Assembly (NCBI GenBank): GCA_904063045.1
Contig: CAJFCJ010000011.1
Span: 124,001-188,000, forward strand
Length of the DNA stretch: 64,000 nt
Reading direction: 5' to 3'
DNA from: Dimorphilus gyrociliatus
Lineage: Eukaryota; Animalia; Annelida
Part shown: positions 11,166 to 40,644 of the stretch, piece after piece
How positions within the stretch are numbered: position 1 is the stretch's first letter
Layout: the number at the start of each line of letters is the position of its first letter
The notes under the pieces: generated by a model
What the model was told of the DNA's origin: nothing
The model's input: only the letters and a program-made list of their open reading frames with translations
The model's database searches: none
Program-made: the position numbers and the translations under genes

Positions 11166-14100
11166 ATGGCGGCTGTCGACAAACTAGCCGAATCGGGGCA
11201 AGAACCCTTGAAGATTAATGGGAATATGGAAGAAAATGGAGTGAATGGAGAAGATAAATTTAAAATCGAATGGGGTTTTGATTTGGAGGATGCCTATAAA
11301 CTAGCTTTAATGTTTTATCGAGGTAGGATCCTACTATAGGCCTAATTTGGGCGTTTTACACTTTTATAGTTTGACGCTTGCGAAAATCAGATGTATTTTA
11401 ATGGAAACAGCTATACAATGTATTATATTAAGCAAATAACCATAAAGTTTGTCTGTAATGATGAATTACTATCGCTGTAAATATAAAGTGAAAATACCTG
11501 TAAAAACACAAGAATTGGTTGCCTAGAAACAACTAAAATATCTTTGTAGTTTTCGTCTATAGCTAAGATTTTAATATACATTAATGTTGTGTTCTTATAA
11601 CTCTGCTTTATTAATTATTTTTTTTAGAAAAGGAAGGAAAAGCAATGCAACTTTCTTATAAGGATAAAATACGATTAGTAGCCTTAATTAAACAAGTAGC
11701 TTATGGAAAATACAGAGCGGATGTCTCTCCTGCAGTTGGTTTTCTTGATGTCGTCGGTAATGATAGGAGGTAATATTCATTTTCAATTTTTGGTTTTTAA
11801 AAAAGCCGGGTTCGAATAATGGCGCCATCTACCCCCTATAGTCTGATACATCGTCCAAAACTATTTTCAAAGAATTCAACTATAAATAATAGATGATAGA
11901 ATGGTAGACCGTTTGACAAACAATTTTCAGACCAATCGCCGATGCCAGTTTTGATATTATATTTATCACGCAAACCTACTAGGACGTTAATGCTCCTATA
12001 AGTTTTGTATAATTGCTATTATTATGGTCTATACAAAACCTAAATAATGAAAAATTATTGTCCATCTCTCATTCTTTATTAGACGAAGCTATCTTGTTTG
12101 TAATTAAAAGGATGATGGAAGAATATACTTGTTTTATTTTAGAGTTTTTTTAAGCACACACGCTGTCCTTTATATTGATTGGATTTTCTCTAAATGGGAC
12201 TTAATTCTTCCACTGTGACGTCACAACTGATGAAATTTCAACAAACTAGAAAATCCTTCGATTAAATTTCTTATTTAGTTTAGGTTCTTTATTTGTCCGA
12301 CATTTTGTCTTTTATATATATTTTACTGTTTAAGTAAAAAGAGAAACAAACACGAAGAAAGATGAAGTTATAAATACTTTATAGTAAAAAAAATCCTATT
12401 AGGGAAGTAGAAGAGAGAAATTGATTAAAAGCAAAGTTAAGAAAATATCAAGATAAAATTAAGAGAATGAAACTAACACGGAAGGGAAATCAATTAATTA
12501 TATTAATCTATAGATTATCTCTATTAACGCAGATTTACTTAGAGAGCAGAGAAGTCAAGAGTAAAATGTTAAATGAGAAACATGTGGGTTTACGTATTTT
12601 TCTTCCTCTTTTAAGGAAGTTGGCGTGCTAATTAAGTGTGATTGTGCCTCAAATATATACTCTAGTATCCCTATTAAACAGTACAAACTCGGATAACTGA
12701 TGTTTTCCAAGAATTTTATTTTTATTTTGTGATATTTATTTTTCTGTTTTCTCTCTTCTTCTTCTTCTTCATCCTCTTCTTGCTTATAGTCGCCTATTGC
12801 AATAAATACGTTGTACGTAATACGGGAAGCCGTAATATTTTTAGCCATTAATTAGAAATGGGATTCGATTAGTCGGCTACTGCAACGACTGCAAAATTTC
12901 GTTATGCCGCTTGACGGAATTAATAAAGTCTGGGAAGGTCATTTCAGCTTTAGTGTAGGTAGGTCGGGCAGAACGCTCTAACTTAATATTCATATTTAAT
13001 AGAATATTTCTATTGATCTTTCACGCAAGTATTAATACTTTCGTATAATATCCTCGCGATAAGAAATAAAATTCTATCGATTAATAATGGCGTAAATAAA
13101 AGGAGTTTTATAAGGTTTATTAACTTAAATTATATAAAGAGTTAATATATATATTAGATATAAAAATACGGTTATGGATGCGCAATCCGTCTAGTTTATA
13201 ATATTAATATAGATATAGATAAGGAAAGGAGAGTGTAAAACGGGTTGGGAAGAATATATATTGGAAGGGAGATAAAGATAAGGTTTTTATTCTATAAATT
13301 TCAATATGAATTAATAAAGAAAATTTTTCGTTTAGACATTCGAACCCGGTTGAATGGTGGTGAGTTTGCACGGGATTATTCGTTGTAATTAATTATTATT
13401 CATTTTTGTATAATTCTTAATATTTTTAATATATAAAGTATATATATATATATATATACTGTGTATATATATTTATATATATATAAATATATATAGACGT
13501 TTTTAAATTCAATTTCTAGAAATTATTATTGAAAAGAAAAGAAACCGTACAAATTCTTGTCATGTTTATTGATAATTATTTCGTTATCAACCGACCCTTT
13601 TTTTATTGCCTTTCGGTATTCAACCCGCACTCTATGTCAATTTGAAAGTAAATTACTACTTTATTTCTTTTCTTCTTTCTCCCTTCCACTCTATCAGGCA
13701 AGCTTGGCAAAGTTTGGGAGACATGAAGAAGGAAGACGCAATGAGAGAATTTATAGATCTGCTCAATAGGGTTTGTCAACTATTTAAGCCGTTCATGCAA
13801 GCTCAACTGGCCGAAAAGGAGGATAAAGAGAAACAACTGTAAGTCATAAATGTATCAGTAACAATTCTTTGTTTCTACGTTTTTCCGAATTCTCTTTTTT
13901 ATAAGATAATCGCTGATCAGGGAGCTTTGTAGTTTTATAGTTATGTAGAATTTTAAATCTAAAGCGATATACAACGACAAAAAAACAATTTACAAGGGTG
14001 CTTTTAACGTATTCGCATATTTATTGTTTATTTCTAACTTATTATAGCAGGTTAACGTTTCTAAACTATAAAGAGCTATAGAGATTTTCTTTTTGTTATA

Positions 14101-17100
14101 TTATTCGTTTTTTCAAAAGTAAAAGAGAAGAAAAAAAGAAACTTGTCTCCCTTTCTTTTTTCTCTGTGTTTCTTATGTATAAATCCTGCGATGTCATTTT
14201 CTTGGCGTTCTAAGCTTCCTTTTTCTAAGCGGACGATTTTAACGCGGTTCAACGGCTTTTTATTCCATCGGGCTTTGTAAGGATAAAGGGGTTGAGCGAG
14301 AGGGAGGGAAAGAGGATAGAGAAAAAAAAAATATATATAGAAAGAACGAAAGAAATTAGAAATATAAAAGTGATAACACAATTCGAGAGTGAAGATGATT
14401 CCGATCAATATTATTATCTCTTTTATTCGACCATAGACGGAATGGTGCACAGAATATATAGATTACGCAGGTAAAAAAAAACAAGAGGAAAAAAAGCGGT
14501 AAAGATGATTAATATGAAAGAAAAAGACACAAGAAGATTCTTTTTTCTTGTTGTTGTTGTTGATTTATGATAGGCGTGACAGAATAAATATGAGTATAAC
14601 AATAACAATTAGGACAGTAACATACACACATATATATGTATATATAAATGTCTATATACGTATTTACATAAGAAATACAAGCGAACAATGCATATAAAGA
14701 TAAATCGGATACTGATCGTAGAAAAGAGGGTAAAGCAGTTTTCTTTTTTTTTTTTAGTTTGTCAATACCTAGATAATTTTTTATTGTTATAATATCGTAT
14801 TAGAAAGTTTTTGGGATCGATATAAGATTTTATATTATAATGCGAGATAATTTCTGAAGAAAAGAAAATTAGGATAGGGCGGGGGTAGTATTTTTCTTCT
14901 CTTTTCCTTTTTTTTTATTCTCACTTTTACCCCCCCTCCCCTCTCATTCTCCCCTACCCGTTATTCTAGAAATTATCAAAGAGTAGGGAAAGAAATCAAA
15001 AAAGAAAACATAGGCCGAAAACGAGAACGTTTTCCTCCTATTTTCTTTTTGTCCGTTGATGAATATTTATTTATATTTGGGTTTTGGGAATGAGGAACAT
15101 AAAAGAGAGGTTGTACGAGAGAGATGAGAGAGAAAAAGTGTCAAAGAAAATAAAGTTGGATTGTTACTTCACCAGTGGACGCCGTTCGAATCGTATATCT
15201 AGAGAGTTTTATCTATGGGGTCACTTTAGTCTATATATCGATCGCTAGTCTGGGGTGGCGTATTTGCAGTCGAGATGGGAATACGATTGCAGTATGTAGA
15301 ATTTGTAAAACTTTCCCCCCCCCTTTTCGTTCTTTTAGCCTTGAGCTTTCTTTTTCCCTTTGTATTTTATCAATTTACGAATTTTTTTTAAATATTTTAT
15401 TTTCATATTTTTTGATTATAATTGATTGGATTATTGAAAATTTTCTTTTCACGTATTTTCTATTTCTTTTTGCTTCTAGAAGAGAGGAAGAAGTTGCTAG
15501 GAAAGAAGTTGAAGAGGCGGCTGAAAGGGAGAGAAAACTGTTGGAAGAAGAAGCAAGAAGACAACAAGAATTAGAAAGAGTCAAACTGAGCCAGCAAGAA
15601 CAACATATCCGAGCCGTTCTCAATCAACAAACTTATCCGCAGTTTAGTCAATATGCCGCTCAACAGCACCCAAATGATAGTCAACAACAAGCGGCTTTAC
15701 TAACTCAGTTGCAAGAGCAACACTATCAGCAGTATATGCAGCAAGTGTATAGGCAACAGCTTCATCAACAACAACAGTACAAACAGCTGAATCCATCAAC
15801 AACGTCTTTGGAGGATGTGAATGTTAAGGATAAAACTGAATCGGATAATGAAGAAGACGAAGAAGAAGGTAAGAGAATTATAGCGGAAGAGGACGAGAAA
15901 GTTGATCCGCAGCTAGTGGATAAATTGCCGCCTATCGTTCCCGCTGCGCTTTGGACGAAGAAGGAAGGAAAACGGTTTAAGGAAGAAAGACGTAGGGCAA
16001 CGCACACTTTTAAAGTGCCTTCGCTTTCTTCTGCGACGGTGCGTTTGTTAGTTTTGCGGTCGGCGGCACTCATTATTTACCTCTTTTCGGTTTTTTTAGC
16101 CTGATTTCTTTTTATTTTTTTATTAGTAATTTGAATGCACAGTAATTTAGACGCATAATGAAGCGTATTCTCGTTTCGTCGATCATCGTTCCATTTCATA
16201 TAAGGAATAGACGAGATTAGGGACCTCGAGAAAACGTTAAGAATTATCCCCTACTTTTTAAACCCTCGAATAAATAGATGGAATATATATAGATATATAG
16301 ATATACTGTATATATATATATAAGATAAAAAGTAGTATGGGAAAGAGAAGATAAAAAAACATTGATCGAATAGGAAATATTCCAAAAGCTTTCCGTTGTT
16401 CGTCTTTCTTACTAACAAAAAAGGAGAGGGAACGATGTATTGGCTCTATAACAAGAATACTACAAGACTAGTTTTTTTTTTCTTAGTTTTGAGGTATTTT
16501 TATTTTATTTTCCTTTATTTTAGATTTAGAAAAAAATCTCCTACTTCTCTTCTCTTCTTCCAGCTGTTTCTTTTACTATTTTTCTTTTCTTTTCTTGTTT
16601 TTTTGGATGAAAAGAAGAGAAAAGAAAAGAAAAGAGAAGGGAAGAAGAGAAGGTGAACTTTGGATAGTTTTAACCTAGAATTATGCTATACGAGAATAAA
16701 TTTATGTTACCTCCTTCTCTTACACACCTCCCATAATTTTTACGTTAGACAATAACTTGGTTTATGAGAGAGCCGTATGAAGAAGTCTTATACGTGAGAC
16801 GGAGAAGGAGTACTTGATACTTTTTTTGTTTGTCAAAAAAATGAAAGCCTAGGGCTATGACAAATTGTGCATAATTCTGGGAGAATAATTTTCTAGTATC
16901 TAGGGTTCTTTACGCCTTTACAATTTTATGAGTAAATTTAATTGCGTTTTCACGTTCATACCGTAAAGGAGTAAAGCCATTTTTCATTTAGTTTTATATA
17001 TATATGTGACATAACATAATCATAAATAACGTTTGTCGTCGTTATCGTCGTTCTTCCTTCTCCGCTCCGATTTTTTACAAGGTTCACAAAAAAAAAGAAA

Positions 17101-18379
17101 AAAAAACAATTACTATTCCAGATACTTTTTATTTTTCTTTTTAGTTTTTGCATGCACGTATTCCTTTATTGTCTTGTCGTAGGAGAGAAAACATCGGTTA
17201 TCAGTGCCCCGTCCATGTGGACTAGGAAAGAACTGAAGGAATTTAAAGAGAGTTTAAAAGCTGATAAGGATACTATCTTAAAAGTCGGATCGGGGGAGAC
17301 AGTAACGGTATGTGTTGTGATAGTTATATTTAAGACAAAAAAAAAAACAAATAAGATAGCAAACTAAAAAAGAATATGATAACAAAGGAAAGTAACAAAC
17401 TTTCCATTGTTAAGACAAACGAATAATTAAAGTGTTGAGCACCTACTTTAATCTGTTTGGCGTTGTGGTATTGTGCATGGCTTTTGTCGCCGACCTCAGT
17501 ACCATCTACTAAACTTTTCTATTAACTATATACAAAACGAGCAGGAGATTGCCTACTGGAATTTGGCGCCTCCCTTTGATGAGAGTCATACCCTCTAGCC
17601 CTCAACTCTTATTCATCCTTTACTGTCTATTAGTATTTTACGACATAGGAAAATTTATATTAATTTATATAGTAAGAGACAAGAAAGATAATTACCTGAG
17701 CAAAGTTATTAATTTACCTTAAATAGTCTTCCTTTCACTTTTTGACAATGAATATTAACTGTAATGAGTTTCTATTCTTGTATACGTTTATAATATATAT
17801 ATATATATATATATGTATACGTGATGAAAAAGGAAGAATATCCTTGACCTAGAGTTTGAAAAAAAGAATAAGAGATGAGAGAGAGAGAGAGGGAGAGGCG
17901 GGAGATGTTTAAAGTCCAGACTGGGGAACAATTTACTGCTCGGGAAATAAAGTAAATAATGTTATCCGCCTATCTTACTAACTTTCCCTAAACAGATCCG
18001 CGTCCCGACTAGTGAACATGGCAACTGTCTTTTTTGGGAATTTGCAACAGATTACTTCGATATAGCTTTTGGTGTCTCTTTCGAATGGACTATAAATCCT
18101 GAGGAAAATATACGTGTTGAGATCAACGAATCTAGCGACGAAGAGGAGGAGATCGAGGAAGGTGCAAAACCACCAGGTGATGTTGAAGGTGGAAAAAAGA
18201 AACCGGATGGACCTCCTCAAGATGAAATTATACCGGTTTATAGGCGAGATTGTCATGAAGAGGTTTATTGTGGTTCCCACATGTATCCTGGAAAAGGAGT
18301 TTATTTATTGAAATTCGATAACTCCTATTCTTTGTGGAGGAGTAAAACAGTTTACTACAGGGTTTACTATACAAATTAG
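11166..18379 (+). CDS. ACBD3: Golgi resident protein GCP60 / acyl-CoA binding domain protein 3 (ACB, charged and Q-rich regions, GOLD)
   Basis: Phase-consistent exons 11166-11322, 11628-11769, 13698-13838, 15480-15868, 17183-17307 and 17996-18379. Motifs: [104 protein letters not shown]. Confidence 0.95.
11819..11835. promoter_or_regulatory. Palindromic ATGGCGCCAT followed by CTACCCC (CTCF-like plus YY1-like)
   Basis: Read directly in ACBD3 intron 2. Confidence 0.45.
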
Positions 18380-20248: not shown

Positions 20249-23200
20249 TTAAAAACATTCGCAAGGAACGACGCCGATTCCAACGCCACCTTGATGGTAT
20301 TTCATAGGTGCTACCGTGTTCCACTCTTCAGTTTCTGAAACGAGAAGGAATGCAATAAAAGCTTACTTACATAATTCAGCATAACTGAATATATCAAACT
20401 CTCTGGTTTGAGAGAAAGAAAATCTTCCCTCTTAGATTTAGAACATAAAATTTCCCATCATTTAATTATTCTATAAGACTTCTTTTATTACTTAATAAGT
20501 AAATATAAATTGATTTTTTTTTTAACACTACAATTGATGATCATTTATCCTCTTTTATGTCCTGCTTTTTAAGTTCATCATAACAGAGTAGAAGTCATTA
20601 TTGAGATAAAAAAAAAAAGAATGTCCTAGATATATAGATTAACTCAACAGACATTATGAGTTTGTTCTTTTTATCGAACGTTTTAAAGCATTAACTAAAT
20701 ACACACAAAAAAGAAAAGGATTGTTGCAGTTCAAAAGTTCAAGTATTCTTTGAGATTTGTAAAGCGTCTTTTTAGACTTGACGTTGCTGTACTAAGCTCT
20801 TCTTTTAGGTGATATTCATAGGAAAGAAGATATGAGACTAGTTGATGAGCATTGACTTATAACATATACCCCTCTCGCTATCTGCCTATTCTCAAGATAT
20901 ATTCATATTTTGGATATTTTTAATAAGGTAAATGTCTAATTATTACTACATAGACGAGCTACGCAAGCCCTCTATGCGTAGTTCCCATGCTATTTGATGT
21001 TATTAGGCTAATTTGACAGTTTATTCTAAATTAGGAGCGACATTTGTTGATTGCGTTTGAAGACGCCTCAGTAAATTAGTGCTTGCTTTATCTTACTGAT
21101 TTATCTACAATTTTAAAGGAATTTCATTGTACTAATTAACAATATAGCTAATTAAACAACTTAATTTGGGAATATTTACTATAATTTACAATAAAAATGA
21201 CGTCATAAACGGGTCCTAACCTGGATCATACATTTCGACAGACGACAAATTATCAGCGCCGTCATAACCTCCTACAGCATACAATCTTCCGCCGTTCGCT
21301 ACCAAAGCCACTCTCGACCTTTTAACCTGTAGTAAAATAGGGTAGGTCACGTGAGTCTTTTTTCCAAACTTTTTTGCCCAGACAGGACGACGGCATGCCC
21401 TGCCGCATTCTACGGACTGAGCGCCTACTCGACGCATCAGATTTTCGCGCATTTGTTCATAATATTTCTTTTCCTCAAAAAAACGAGGAAAAAATTATTT
21501 TTGAATAGAATAAATGCACGATCTGGTGTGGCGAGTGACGCTTGTTTACTACCTGCATATTTGTAATTTGAGTCCATTGACGTGTGACTGCGCAGAAACA
21601 TTCGACGCTCTATCGAATTAAAATTAACAGAGTGTAAAATTTGTAAAACAAGTGCAAATATTTACGATGGAAAGATAAAAAAAAAAAAAAGTTTGTAACT
21701 AATTTATTTAATTAACCTTTAGGAAACCATTTCCGTCGTAACCGCCAGCAGCATACAACTTGCCTAATAGCACTGTAACACCTAATCTGCAACGTTTTGT
21801 TGACATTTTAGGAGCTTCTTCCCATTTGGATTGGGTTGGTGAGTAGCACTCGACACTGTCGAATATTGACAAACCGTCGTGACCACCGAGGACGACTATG
21901 CGATTATCAAATGTTGCTATTCCGGAAGCGCTTCTATGCTTTCTCATACTACATATTTCTCTCCATTTCTTTTCTTTCGGATCATAGCATTCGACAGAAT
22001 TAAGGGAAGATATCCCATCGTAACCTCCACAAACATACAGTTTATTTTCAAGCACGGACACGCCGAGAGCGCTTCTTCTACATTTCATAGGCGGCGCTGA
22101 ACTCCATTTTTTGGTCCTTATGTTATATGTTTCAACGGTGGCTAAACGATTCTGGCCGTCATAGCCCCCGATAGCGTATAATGTATCATCTAAAACTGCA
22201 ACGCCTACCCTACTCCTTACAGTTTGCATTGGCTGAGCTATTTCCCATTTTTTATTCGTAGGATCATAAAATTCAGTTGCCGCCTCTGAATCACCCGACA
22301 AGGTTATTCCACCCACTACGAATATCCTTCCAAAAGCCTAAACGAACAAAAGGTATAATTAATACCTCAAAAAGTATTTATATATATTTGGGTTGTGTAC
22401 TAACTGCAGGACAGGCTCTCGGCCTAGTCCGAAAAGACTTAAGGAAAGGTCTGCGATCTGGCATTAGGTGATAATCCTTTGCTTCATCAACTAAATCTCT
22501 ACAGTTGATATCCTGCTTTATAAGATTTTCATTCATAACTTTATCAATTAAATATTTTGGAGGTAAAAGGGGCAATCTGACTAATTTTAACAATGGATAA
22601 AGATAATCCTTCCTCTCTTCGCTCTCTTTAATCCATCTTATTAAAGCCTCAAAGACATTATCCTCTCCTCCATTCAAAGTTTTAACATTCAACTGATCGT
22701 TGTCCAATAATTCACTAATTTCGTCGGAAGACAATTTAAGAAATTCTTCCGTTTTTGAAATTTCCATAAAATTCTTGTGTATAAACTGAAATTGTTGTAA
22801 ATATAGAATAATTTGATTAAAATCTCTTAATTATATATAATTCATCTAATTAGCATATCATTTTATTTCAACTATTTTTGTTACCTTTATGGATTCATCG
22901 ACGAGACTCTTACAAAAATATCTTTCGGCAAATCGTTTAACACCAAGAGCGTTTTGAACGCTCAATCTTTTTTGCATAAATGCTGCGCAAGCTTCTTTAA
23001 CACATGTTATTTGTAAAAAATTAGCACCAATTAATAAATTTTCGGCATTTGATGTATCTATTCGAACTTTTCCTGTATATGCAAAATTTAAAAGACTTTC
23101 AAGAGCTTCGACATTAAGTCCCTTCATGACAATATCATCTTGCCCTGCCTCAACCATATCATTTGTAAACATCATTTCAAAATAAGGTATACTCCCGCTT

Positions 23201-30861: not shown

Positions 30862-32602
30862 ATGGCCAATAGAACTGCAACAGGAGATTGCAAAAACAAT
30901 GATAATATTCCCTTATTATATGTAATAACGTGTAATACTATTTTTGCTATTGCCGTCGGCTCAGTTTTGACGTTGTTCATCATGAGAAGAATATCTAGAA
31001 AAATTCAACTAAGACACGAAAGAGAAAGAATATGCTCTCTTATGCATCGTCTTTATTGGCTGCACGAAGAAGATATTTCTACTTCTTTATTTGTTTTGAA
31101 TAAGATGAGAGAAAGCTACTTATTTGACAGAGTTTCGGAATTATTGGTTTTTTCGCACAAATATAGAACTCATGGAATGGAAATTGTTGCCGTAGAATCT
31201 GATCTATCTTGTCTACCTCCTAAACGAAATTTTAATAAGTTATTATTAACCGTACGAAAAGTTGAACGACTTTTTGAGGCATTGACGATGGAATTACCGT
31301 GCGGAAATAATGGGGTAGATGGCTCAATATCATCAGCCGTAGGAGGTACAATTCTAATGTTAGCATTAGCGACAAGTACCCTTTGGTGCGATTCGAGAGC
31401 TAAAATGATAAGGTCTGTATAACCTCTTTACTGCTTACATCAATATTCCATAAATTAGTTAATAACAGTAGTAAATCCACTATAAAAAGATAATCAGTAA
31501 TTCATTTATTAATGTAGGGTAAAAAAGAAAAGATATTGATTTCGTTTTATTACATATTTACAGGAGATTAATACATTATTTATGTGGTAGAGGTGCTGCA
31601 ATTAGATATGAAAGAGAAACAATAGGAGACAAAAATTTAGCGGCTTGTGTTGAAACGCTTCAGTACGTTGATTATCTTACTTTAGTTGACGATCATTTTG
31701 TTTTGGGTGACGCCCATATAAGTCCAATATTAAAGGGTGACTTAAGGAATAAGATACGGTATGTTGATACCGTTTTGGCAAGCTGGACTGAACGACGGAA
31801 AGGAATGGCTAATAAGGAAATGCTGGAAGCCTACTATTCTGCTAGAGATGTTTGTATAGTCACTTAGTAGCGGAGGTAGTCTAATATCATATATTTCCAC
31901 TTAACAGATATGTATTAGGGAGAATATTATAACGTCTAAGGCGAATTTTCCCGATATTGTTGAAAAGGTGTCCGATAATTCAAAAACACCTGAATGTATT
32001 AAAGGGTTACGTCATCTCTTAAGAAAAATGACAACACCGCCTAATATTACAAAATTGGAAAATGACGAAAAATTTTTTCAGCTAATAATGCATACTCATG
32101 ACGCTTTGTATACTTGGCATGATAATCGTTCCATGTTAGATATAATCGAAAGAGTTCGCTCCAATATATACGCTTGTCTGAAGGGCTTAAGGTATTTTAA
32201 TATTGAATATATCAATGAAATATGAATATATAATTGAAATATTCCATTTATATTTTCTTCTTTAGCATCGACGCCCTTCTAATCGATAAGGAGCTTAGTA
32301 AAGCAAAATTGGAGCAATTAGAGAGGGAACTATACAAGCATCTTAATTATTTAACTTTAAAACAAGTTCAAAGGGAACGCCGACACTATCCGGCCGATTC
32401 GACAACTCTTCCAACTGCTGAAAGCGAATCTTCCATTTATACGATAGCTCCGTCTGGTCCTCTTAATTCAACAAAGCCTTGTAATAAATACGTTGATGAA
32501 TCGAGTATTATCAGCAGTGGTTCATTATATGCAACAGCCCAGAGTATAACCTCTAGCGACCTACGTGTTCAATCCAGCTGTGACGATGAGACTGCCGTAT
32601 AG
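30862..32602 (+). CDS. Hypothetical protein with an N-terminal transmembrane helix and helical cytosolic region
   Basis: Phase-consistent exons about 30862-31411, 31564-31849, 31908-32191 and 32267-32602. Hydrophobic stretch LLYVITCNTIFAIAVGSVLTLFIM followed by RRISRK. No family recognised. Confidence 0.65.
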
Positions 32603-33414
32603 TCGTTATCTTCTTTGATCCCCTTAGTTAAACTTTGACCCATGTCTCAAAAGTCTTAAACTCATTTCCCCGTAGAAAATTTCCCCATAGTTTATTCCTT
32701 TTCAAGAATATTTGCTTCTTATCAGTATTAAGGAATAATAGGTTATTTGTGCTTAGTAATAAAACGCCCTTTTTACTTTTTCGGTTTTTGTTCAGTAGGT
32801 GGCACACTAGTCTGATAATTGAAGATAGCAAGGGTATTAGAAGCAACTACCCCATCTGTTGAACAAACTAAAATTCCTTTTTCGAAAATAAATAAAAGAG
32901 CATATATATTGTACTCTTTTAGACAATGTCAATGTTACAAAATGATGAAAAAAGGAAAAGATACACTAATAATTTAGTAAAAGCTCAATCTGCATTGATA
33001 ATTTTACTTCCCTCTAGCGCATCTTTTCATCTTTCAGCTGAAAGGGTTATCAATACGCCAATATTTCATTTTATGAATATTTCTCGGGATCTCTCTAGAT
33101 TACGTCAAACGAACATATCAATGGAAAATTATTTTCTTAAAGTTTCTCATCCTTCAAGAGGTTTTACTTTAAAACAAAAACTATATATAGAATATATTAA
33201 TTATTAAAAACATAGAAAAGTTTCTTTATAAATAGATTACTGATCAAAAAACTTAACACGATAATCTCTTTTTATGAGAAAATATAAAGAAGAAGGAAAA
33301 GAACAAATATCCTACCAAGTATAACATTTTCCCTAATGTAAAAAGCGCACGAAAGAAAAGGAGAAACAAGTTAAATATATATAAAAAATAATAATTTACT
33401 ACTATTCATCATTC

Positions 33415-37854: not shown

Positions 37855-40644
37855 TTACTGATCTAGCAGTTTCCTAAAGTTGTTTATCTCATGAATACTT
37901 TTTGATAATCTATATAAAACATCAAAGAAGCAAAAATTTATCATTTTATATTTGTACAAAGTATTAATAATAGTAATACAAACCTTCCGAAGGCATTTAG
38001 GAGAGATACGATCTCGGTTCTTCTCATTTGGAAACGATTTTTTTTGCTTGCATCCAATGTAGAATTTGGTCCGGGATCGTCTCCCGAAAAGAGAATTTTA
38101 AGAGCGGTTCCCATTCCTTGTACTTGTAATTTTCCCCATAATCTGCATTTATCACAGCCGACACAGTCCATAATTTTTGATATATTTCGAAAATGAAGCT
38201 TAAACTCGTCCTATATTTTAAAATAATAATATTTACATTAGACATTGATGTTATCATATAGTTTTAATAAAATAATCTCACTTTTAATTTTGCTGCTTTT
38301 CTGGAATCGCCTTTAAATAATTTTGTTTCATCAAAATGATCCTCAAAACTATTCACAATGTCTAAGAAATCAGAAATGGCTTGGCGAACTTCTTTATCTT
38401 CTTTATCATTGCCAGTATAATAAAGTTCCTGGAAGGGCAAACATTTCTCAAATCTATTAAAAGATTTTTTGAAAAATTACCTTTTTTAAATAAGGCGCTG
38501 CTTTAGCTAAAGCACGTAGCTCTACCAAATAAGTGAAGTATAAATTCTTTAGTCTCTGTGGTCCTTCACCATTTGTAGTTTCAGGATTGAATCTTCTTTT
38601 AAATTCAGCAAGATTTGGCCCCCAAGTTATAGTATTGGCGAAATGATCTAGAGCACAAAAAGAGATGACCTCCTTCAAATATTATTTTTACAGTTACCTT
38701 TAAATTGCCACATGGCTGTTAAATGAGTATTTATGCTGGTATGTAGTCCAGAAATCATTCTATAAAATACTCTTTTCTCTAAGCACATATCTGAAAAAGA
38801 TATAATTAACATCATTATTATTAAATTTCTAATAATAGTTATATCATTTTATTAATTTAATTAAAAATTTTTGACAAAAAGAAGAGAATAATAAAAAGAT
38901 AAAAAGACTTGACACAAAAGGAAAGAATTAAGTTCCAAGCTTAACAACATTTTCCAAGACGTTCACATATCTTTTTAAACGCTGCAAGCACAAAGTGAAT
39001 GAGTGCTAAGGTGTCAAGAAAAAGGCATGTTACATCTACAAACTCTAGAAGAGTATCAGAATGACCGTTTAGATTAAGTACTTACATTAAAACACTAACG
39101 TTTTCTTTTTTATGTCCAGCATAAGTTGTTATTTATAGTGTACATATATAATTAAGAACCTATACTGCACATAATTTTGTTCAAAACAACATTCGAAAAT
39201 TTACCTTTCAAAATTGATTCTGTTTAATAAATTAATTATAAATACAAAAAAAGCGGGATTTCTACTATTTTGTTGTTGCTTAGGAAGAAACAATCTTAGT
39301 GCATGAAAAATTTTATTCAACAACACATAATCTTTCTATCAAACTTTTAAAACTATCTAGCACCAATTGAACTAAAAGAATTATATACCTGATCGTTTAT
39401 CGGATAAATTAGCCCCTATTATAAATAACTCAAAATCAACATTTACTAAAAGAAAATTTCTATAATGTCACTAAGGTTAGATAAAAAGTGTTTGATTTTT
39501 TCCTTTAAATATCTATAATATTAAATAAACTACCTATATTTTTCTTTTGAATAAATGATGTATAATCAGCTGCTTCAGTCCTTTTTTGAAAAGAAAATTT
39601 TTTTAATTTATGTTGAAATAATAACATATTTATATTTATTATGTCCTACTTGAAACAGTTTTCCTCGTAGACAGAACTCCAAACTCTATGAGCTGAAAAA
39701 CCTCCATAGCCAGTATAACGTTCAGGATTTAATAATAAATTAACGTATTGGCAACTATCAGAATTATCATCTAGAATGTATATGTTTAATTTATTTGTTG
39801 ACTCATTAAGTAATTATTTTCTTATTTACCGTCTAATTCACAAAAATTATCTTGAGCTTCATCATGTTTTTGCCAACTTTCGAAAGCCTCTTTATTTTCA
39901 GTGCTAATTGTGTGATCCAATTTTCCTAAAGACCCTTTATTGTCGTCGCAATTTGAAGTTTTTTGACTTTCTCTAGCATACTATGTAGCATATGTTATAA
40001 AAAATTTGTAAAGAGGTCTTGTTTAAATAAATATTAAACCTTATGGAATGAGTCGGCTTTTTTGATACCATCTGGTAATTGATCCTGTATCAGTCAAAAT
40101 GTTTCAAGCTATTATGAAAATGATGAAAATGTTTAAAATGTAACCTCTCGACATTCAGAAACGTGGCAGTCTTTTAAAACACATCCGGAATCATCTCCCC
40201 AAAAAGGACATCCTTTATTTAGATTAACCTGATGGGTTTAAATGTTTATGTTGCGTCTTTCAATATTGAAAAGAAATTACTTTAAAAAATTTGAAATAGT
40301 CTTTATCCAACAAACTCTGAAGACGAGGATAAATCTTGAGATTATTAAAACTGTCAACGCTGTCAACCGTACAAGAACAATCATCCACTTCACCCTTCAA
40401 CTAAGAAAACATAAATATTTTAAAATGTTGTAAACATCATAGATCTTATTATTAAAAAAAGAACTTAAAAAAAAACGTTCGAAGACGAAATTATAGATCC
40501 CAATGAAAAAGCGCGATAAACTTTACGAACCTTGCAAAAGCAGCCCTGTCCTACATCATTTGCTAAGATTAGAGATGATGAAATAAATATAAAAAATAGA
40601 TAAAAATTATTTTTTTGTATAAAAGCAAATATTCTTGAAATCAT
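37855..40644 (-). CDS. ERO1: ER oxidoreductin 1 (ERO1-like)
   Basis: Signal-like N-terminus, GCFCK|[60 protein letters not shown] and [16 protein letters not shown] (CxxCxxC); ends ..FRKLLDQ*. Confidence 0.95.

Follow-up and report, generated by a model that had tools for sequence, protein, structure and literature searches.

The 64,000-nt window analysed here (positions 124,001 to 188,000 of contig CAJFCJ010000011.1 of the annelid Dimorphilus gyrociliatus; coordinates below are those of the window) has the base composition of AT-rich animal DNA and carries on its forward strand, at approximately positions 11166-18379, the ACBD3 (GCP60) gene, corresponding to the public model DgyrCDS8316. ACBD3 is a Golgi scaffold that recruits PI4KB; its GOLD domain is hijacked by picornaviruses, and its own Golgi targeting is still being worked out. 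The exons of the window are matched at 100% identity by the NCBI protein DgyrCDS8316 (P0002, 486 aa). This protein possesses an N-terminal ACBP domain (PF00887, 60.5 bits), with the window exons in 11166-13836 covered at 100%, and the last exon encodes a C-terminal GOLD_2 domain (17996-18376; PF13897, 196 bits, E=3.9e-58). Upstream of the GOLD domain an x-W-T motif is present twice, as MWT in the short exon at 17183-17307 (exon B) and as LWT in a stretch directly following the donor of coding exon 4 (copy A), and it is the relationship between these two segments that is described here (Table 1). Neither matched Pfam when searched alone; the GOLD_2 model begins only 8 residues before the exon border.

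The reading frame of exon 4 (15868+3n) stays open past its donor for 57 residues, up to a second donor (ACG/gtgcgt) at 16038/16039, and copy A lengthens exon 4 in frame by 170 nt. Among the four donor-acceptor combinations, only 15868>17183>17996 and 16038>17996 are productive. The route 16038>17183 reaches a stop after 17 codons, and the route 15868>17996 encodes PRPD before an early stop. An initial annotation of this DNA had proposed the open read-through to a phase-0 donor, the exon at 17183-17307 with its own phase-0 donor (ACG/gtatgt), the joining of either segment in frame to the GOLD exon at 17996, the frameshift on inclusion of both and the alignment of the two; its coordinates and sequences were found to be correct throughout. 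BLASTP of copy A against exon B gave 10/22 identities over the first 22 residues of the cores (E=3e-5). In a global alignment with one 1-residue gap, 37.5% of 40 positions were identical; its score of 54 was reached by 0/2000 shuffles (13.9 +/- 5.3). The resemblance between copy A and exon B exceeds chance.

Copy A could be compared with a 9.2-kb genomic contig of a diverged relative (L001), found through a word-index search with the read-through open reading frame (ORF), which matched a 190-aa ORF (P0001) on Logan contigs. Identity to the window is approximately 72-74% in introns and 87.9% in exon 4, rising to 94.7% in copy A as a whole and to 97.5% in its 120-nt core. In L001 the copy is contiguous and in frame with exon 4; eight of the nine substitutions are third-position changes when read in the proposed frame (binomial p ~0.001), and the 40-residue core shows no amino-acid change. 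The linker part of the extension at 15869-15918 likewise behaves as coding sequence (Table 1). At 15992-16038 there are 0 substitutions where approximately 10 would be expected at the intron rate (intron divergence ~23-26%; chance ~5e-6). Past the distal donor, the 21-residue read-through peptide of the window is freely altered in L001 (VRLFVLRSAARIIYLLSVYTLGFFY), and coding selection therefore stops exactly at 16038. The closer relatives represented by RNA runs X3 and X4 differ from the window in copy A at five positions, four of them synonymous third-position changes and one an I>V replacement. Copy A is under purifying selection in the proposed frame.

RNA data were available as assembled contigs from four runs (X1-X4), not as raw reads; in exons, X3 and X4 are 3-5% diverged from the window. 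The canonical joints 13836>15480, 15868>17183 and 17307>17996 are present in the contigs of both X3 and X4. A read-through contig of X3 covers 15840-16038 at a depth of 30.5, with the intron uncovered beyond 16075. Behind 16038 it carries a 27-letter loose end that recurs, letter for letter, behind 17307 and that matches 23/27 letters of window 17996-18022, consistent with the start of the relative's own GOLD exon. In X3 the depths of the read-through (30.5) and of the exon-B joint (41.3) add up to approximately that of exon 4 (69.9), and the A route therefore accounts for roughly one third of transcripts in X3. No mixed A/B joints occur among the contig joints listed for the four runs. In X1 the contig extends 4 nt past the donor and then stops, and is uninformative on splicing. 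Word-index protein searches for a spliced Dimorphilus A-isoform protein turned up nothing beyond P0001 (the read-through ORF) and P0002 (the public model), a blank that means little because assembly graphs break at a splice branch. In X3 and X4, contigs cover the last intron (17308-17995) at approximately 16-25% of the depth of the exons, which suggests partial retention, or unspliced RNA or DNA in these libraries.

It is very improbable, on these data, that the read-through represents non-functional intron retention or a decaying open relic and the junction contig mere noise. Contigs of X4 and X1 continue past 16038 into intron sequence, and X3/X4 partly retain the last intron, as such an explanation would have it. 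However, the third-position bias and the unchanged core peptide stand beside introns in which 26% of bases have changed, the junction falls exactly at the predicted GT and AG, and the X3 depths add up.

The public model describes a different structure. DgyrCDS8316 joins a donor at 15991 (C/gtaggg) to exon B, so that part of copy A is followed by the full exon B with two W-T motifs in tandem (P0002 residues ~300-325). Were this annotation right, exon 4 would run to 15991, a partial A of 15 residues would belong to the linker and the rest of copy A would be intron. The NCBI protein shows exactly that structure, and in frame. The joint 15991>17183 was found, however, in none of the contigs of the four runs, while 15868>17183 is abundant. 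The donor at 15991 is weak (C at -1, gtaggg), and the stretch 15992-16038, which the model assigns to an intron, is fully conserved in a relative whose introns are a quarter different; the sole X3/X4 change within it (position 15999) is synonymous in the A frame. Orthologous A exons, furthermore, stop at the same ACG/gt as 16038. On these grounds the donor at 15991 is probably an annotation artefact, and the public structure is judged very unlikely to be correct; we argue that the gene predictor settled on it to accommodate the read-through coverage while preserving the frame. In Batillaria (P0003) and Paralvinella (P0129), too, the models fuse A and B by reading through the intron.

A second type of exon at this place in the protein was seen on scanning the spiralian GCP60 proteins returned by a search with the public protein. 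The Lymnaea model contains only this A type (LPKIVPASLWTRKDLKEFKDGLRSSKENVVRIGSLATAT before VRVPTH), that of Batillaria contains the A type followed by the usual B type (AAASMWTRKD..GSGETVT), and that of the fluke Paragonimus contains the A type (..GSLATAT). RefSeq GCP60-like isoforms X1/X2 of six molluscs (Littorina, Ostrea, Mytilus californianus, Biomphalaria, Pomacea and Aplysia) and of the nemertean Lineus longissimus differ by exactly an A versus a B exon and are otherwise identical. They share with D. gyrociliatus the exon types, the place in the protein, the order of A before B, the phase-1 acceptor and the phase-0 donor ACN/gt. Further searching identified the A type in Haliotis and in the annelid Paralvinella, where a read-through model has A and then B. 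The genomic order in Pomacea, Lineus and Paralvinella is linker exon, A, B and GOLD exon, with the same phases (Table 1). In these three species exon A is preceded by a polypyrimidine tract and AG of its own, starts in phase 1 and ends in ACG/gtgagt. Exons A and B are each 2 mod 3 long, and therefore inclusion of both or of neither breaks the frame. The reach of the A type is given here as the phyla listed; the word index and 90% clusters hide isoforms. Purifying selection has kept both copies; across phyla the mean identity is 63.6% among A-type and 80.8% among B-type exons. Judged from these sequences, the A/B exon pair goes back to the ancestor shared by molluscs, nemerteans and annelids and has been conserved.

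Copy A shows the A signature, P-A-(S/T/A)-x-W-T ... S-L-x-x-x-T upstream of B with a phase-0 ACN/gt donor, in the form VPAALWT ... PSLSSAT and ACG/gtgcgt, including the diagnostic proline four residues before W. Its hairpin (VPSLSSAT) resembles those of Pomacea (VPSLGTAT) and Lineus (SSLSSST). In a maximum-likelihood tree of 37 exon peptides, the A/B split received support of 100/98, and copy A was placed on the A side on a long branch (length 4.6). Profiles built without the worm scored copy A at 41.6 bits (A) versus 21.7 bits (B), and exon B at 43.3 bits (A) versus 75.5 bits (B). Orthology of copy A to the spiralian A-type exon is the best-supported reading of these comparisons, though not proven. 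Copy A might instead be a recent Dimorphilus-specific duplicate of exon B that came to resemble the A type through convergence or long-branch attraction. Its branch is long, it is 41.6% identical to A-types, little more than to B-types (37.3%), and in an approximately unbiased (AU) test over 42 columns a tree uniting the worm's copy A and exon B was left standing (p=0.154). The free tree is nevertheless better by 11.3 log-likelihood units with its strongly supported A split, the A profile favours copy A by 20 bits and disfavours exon B by 32, and copy A has, besides the proline at -4 and the S-L hairpin, the placement ahead of B and the donor codon that are seen in another annelid. A recent origin from exon B is accordingly considered improbable. 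The initial annotation's description of copy A as a hidden, diverged duplicate holds as far as it is a real duplicate under purifying selection; it is not private to the worm, since it matches an old spiralian alternative exon, that of the mollusc and nemertean X1/X2 isoforms.

Unlike the A exon of the RefSeq isoforms, which is a free-standing cassette 4.5-11 kb past the linker exon, copy A of D. gyrociliatus is much more diverged in sequence and has no acceptor of its own: it is contiguous and in frame with exon 4 in both the window and L001, and the RNA contigs read through. Elsewhere exon A is preceded by an intron of 0.6-11 kb. The most economical history is that this intron was lost in the Dimorphilus lineage, for which intron loss during genome compaction has been described (PMC7854359). 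A 15-nt GT..AG string at 15869-15883, at the very start of the exon-4 extension, is possibly a remnant of the lost intron; the 155 nt that follow (15884-16038) would fit the length class of the A exon.

With exon A contiguous with exon 4 and without an acceptor, the choice between A and B becomes a competition of two donors, the distal one coupled to the skipping of exon B. The locus would descend from an ancient pair of mutually exclusive exons that arose by tandem duplication and encode the opening ~41 residues of the extended GOLD fold of ACBD3. Ancestrally, A and B would have been separate cassettes between the linker exon and the GOLD exon, as in molluscs, the nemertean and Paralvinella, and loss of the upstream intron would have fused exon A to exon 4. 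Use of the donor at 15868 would then lead to exon B (17183) and on to 17996, and use of the donor at 16038 directly to 17996 with exon B skipped. Mixed routes would hit stops and presumably be removed by nonsense-mediated decay. That copy A is one half of an old exclusive exon pair, now chosen by donor selection after intron loss, is regarded as likely, with good confidence.

Beyond the distal donor, the stretch 16039-16100 has diverged less in L001 than the remaining intron (Table 1), with only 2-3 mismatches in its first 45 nt. All of its substitutions alter the read-through peptide, so it is not coding; it may be a splicing control element. RNA pairing that would loop out exon B was considered for an inverted repeat (16062-16088 and 17944-17970; 27 nt, 74% complementary) with one arm approximately 24 nt past donor A and the other 26 nt short of the GOLD acceptor, and was rejected, the repeat being no better than shuffles. 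For the duplex energy of the 62 nt after donor A against the downstream intron, 64/100 shuffles reached the observed best, and the acceptor-side window ranked 13th of 368. Also rejected was the read-through tail (16039-16104; 21 mostly hydrophobic residues, then a stop) as a selected tail anchor, every substitution in the relative changing the peptide. If the distal donor is unused, the product would be a GOLD-less ACBD3 with a tail-anchor-like end, which is probably meaningless, the peptide not being conserved.

In classical exclusive exon pairs such as human ATE1 exons 7a/7b (PMC7797038; for a catalogue of human exclusive exons see PMC5740500), homologous neighbouring exons of the same phase class are used singly in each transcript, and the frame is lost when both are included. 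The ACBD3 exons are likewise homologous neighbours of one phase class whose joint inclusion breaks the frame, and a transcript would carry one or the other. In D. gyrociliatus, by contrast with ATE1-type pairs, exclusivity would come about through two competing donors of one exon together with obligatory skipping of exon B, and no competing RNA pairing is detectable.

The segment exchanged can be placed on human ACBD3. Exon B corresponds to residues 4-42 of the crystallised human GOLD constructs (E ~1e-9), and in the structures of the unique region plus GOLD domain (PDB accession nos. 5LZ1, 5LZ3 and 6HLN) it aligns with residues ~366-404, which run from MWT374-376 through helix 1 and strand 1 to the hairpin with R399 and to V402-T404; T404/V405 is the exon border. 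Human MWT374-376 is needed for golgin-45/giantin binding and for Golgi localisation of ACBD3 (PMC7615549), which bears out the role in Golgi targeting and partner binding that had been ascribed to this segment in mammals. R399 belongs to a membrane-binding site together with L514, W515 and R516, and strand V402-P408 is the docking strand for viral 3A strands (PMC6695192). By alignment, the swapped segment would span the x-W-T motif, helix 1 and strand 1, together with the hairpin between strands 1 and 2 and the initial three residues of the V402-P408 edge strand. In the mammalian ACBD3 literature and the PDB sequences compared, only the B-like version was found.

Within this segment the W and T of x-W-T are invariant in 24/24 aligned sequences. 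Several A-type exons retain the M, and the switch is therefore not one of MWT versus LWT: the proposal that splicing toggles between MWT and LWT versions stands with regard to the switch, seen as 16038>17996 in the relative's RNA contigs, but not with regard to M versus L. The constant differences between A and B are P versus A at -4, KENV versus KDSV, and most of all x-S-L-(A/S)-(T/S)-(A/S)-T versus G-S-G-E-T-V-T. The last of these lies on the hairpin aligned with human R399 and on the beginning of the strand (human V402-P408) that serves partner docking. Relative to B, the A hairpin gains a leucine at its tip next to the conserved L-W-R patch and loses a glutamate. For the A-type GOLD domain of Pomacea, an AlphaFold (AF2) model reaches a predicted local distance difference test (pLDDT) score of 81-90 over the A segment and shows a helix at 17-28, a strand at 34-37, the loop P-S-L and a strand at 41-48. 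Its template modelling (TM) score on superposition with the ACBD3 GOLD crystal structures is ~0.8, and the A exon can therefore be seen as a drop-in replacement. The model and the alignment suggest that A and B isoforms may differ in membrane association and/or in partner docking on the edge strand.

Several points weigh against this account. The joint 16038>17996 is real but thin, being carried by one short contig from one run of a relative 3-5% diverged and not by raw reads of the reference strain. Run X2 is identical to the window, and the junctions lie outside its cover. In X4 the depth of copy A is ~110 against ~690 for exons, which is the level of unspliced background, so that A usage differs between samples. 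The removal of mixed products by nonsense-mediated decay is assumed. The functional difference between A and B is drawn from alignment and model, and the human R399 is Ser in both spiralian versions.

Table 1. Features of the ACBD3 locus of D. gyrociliatus and positions of the corresponding exons in other spiralians.
Sequence	Feature	Position	Strand	Remarks
Window	ACBD3 coding exon 4, Q-rich and acidic linker	15480..15868	+	Ends at proximal phase-1 donor; joints 13836>15480 and 15868>17183 (X3, X4 contigs); P0002 100%
Window	Proximal donor gtaaga (G/gtaaga)	15869..15874	+	Use removes copy A and leads to exon B; 15868>17183 at depth 41 in X3, 692 in X4
Window	In-frame linker part of exon-4 extension, 16 residues	15869..15918	+	Contiguous with exon 4 in X1 and X3 contigs; 5/6 L001 substitutions third-position
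Window	Copy A core, 40 residues, spiralian A-type	15919..16038	+	97.5% identical in L001; 3/3 changes third-position
Window	Donor gtaggg of public model DgyrCDS8316	15992..15997	+	Inferred from P0002 sequence; joins partial copy A to exon B
Window	Distal phase-0 donor gtgcgt (ACG/gtgcgt)	16039..16044	+	Spliced to 17996; X3 loose end
Window	Better-conserved intron stretch past distal donor	16039..16100	+	82% identity in L001 versus 73.8% for 16039-16322
Window	Exon B, canonical B-type, 125 nt, 41 residues	17183..17307	+	Phase-1 acceptor, phase-0 donor ACG/gtatgt; joints 15868>17183 and 17307>17996
Window	Last exon, rest of GOLD domain	17996..18379	+	Starts cag/ATC; acceptor common to A and B routes; Pfam GOLD_2; stop codon 18377-18379
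Pomacea	Exon A	~38959-39089
Pomacea	Exon B	40153-40274
Pomacea	GOLD exon	from 42877
Lineus	Exon A	31158-31331
Lineus	Exon B	32847-32962
Lineus	GOLD exon	from 37402
Paralvinella	Exon A	~38471-38607
Paralvinella	Exon B	39974-40093
Paralvinella	GOLD exon	from ~40963

Downstream of ACBD3 and convergent with it, long ORFs with Kelch-repeat-like sequence (GGYDG, LYAIGGYDG) were identified on the minus strand at 21216-22316, apparently belonging to a KLHL-type gene. Near-identical or identical pieces of the ACBD3 gene were also found in marine and coral metatranscriptomes (X1, X2, X6 and X7), and these environmental samples therefore contain Dimorphilus or a very close relative.

The literature search brought up no paper on alternative ACBD3 exons, these isoforms included, and the mollusc and nemertean A/B isoforms exist only as automatic RefSeq predictions. 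ACBD3 is a new gene among the known tandem-duplicate exclusive exon pairs, with an unusual architecture in the worm. It is proposed more tentatively, at somewhat less than even confidence, that spiralian ACBD3 would supply two physiologically distinct adaptors from one gene, serving different membranes or partners, and that in Dimorphilus the cassette switch has been rewired to a choice of 5' splice site. The locus flags a probable error in a public gene model. A conserved natural variant of the segment that comprises the golgin-binding motif, the hairpin and the docking strand offers a ready-made pair with which the role of this segment can be tested. The Dimorphilus locus indicates that intron loss at the time of genome compaction can turn a cassette-type exclusive exon into a donor-choice switch, with both isoforms kept.

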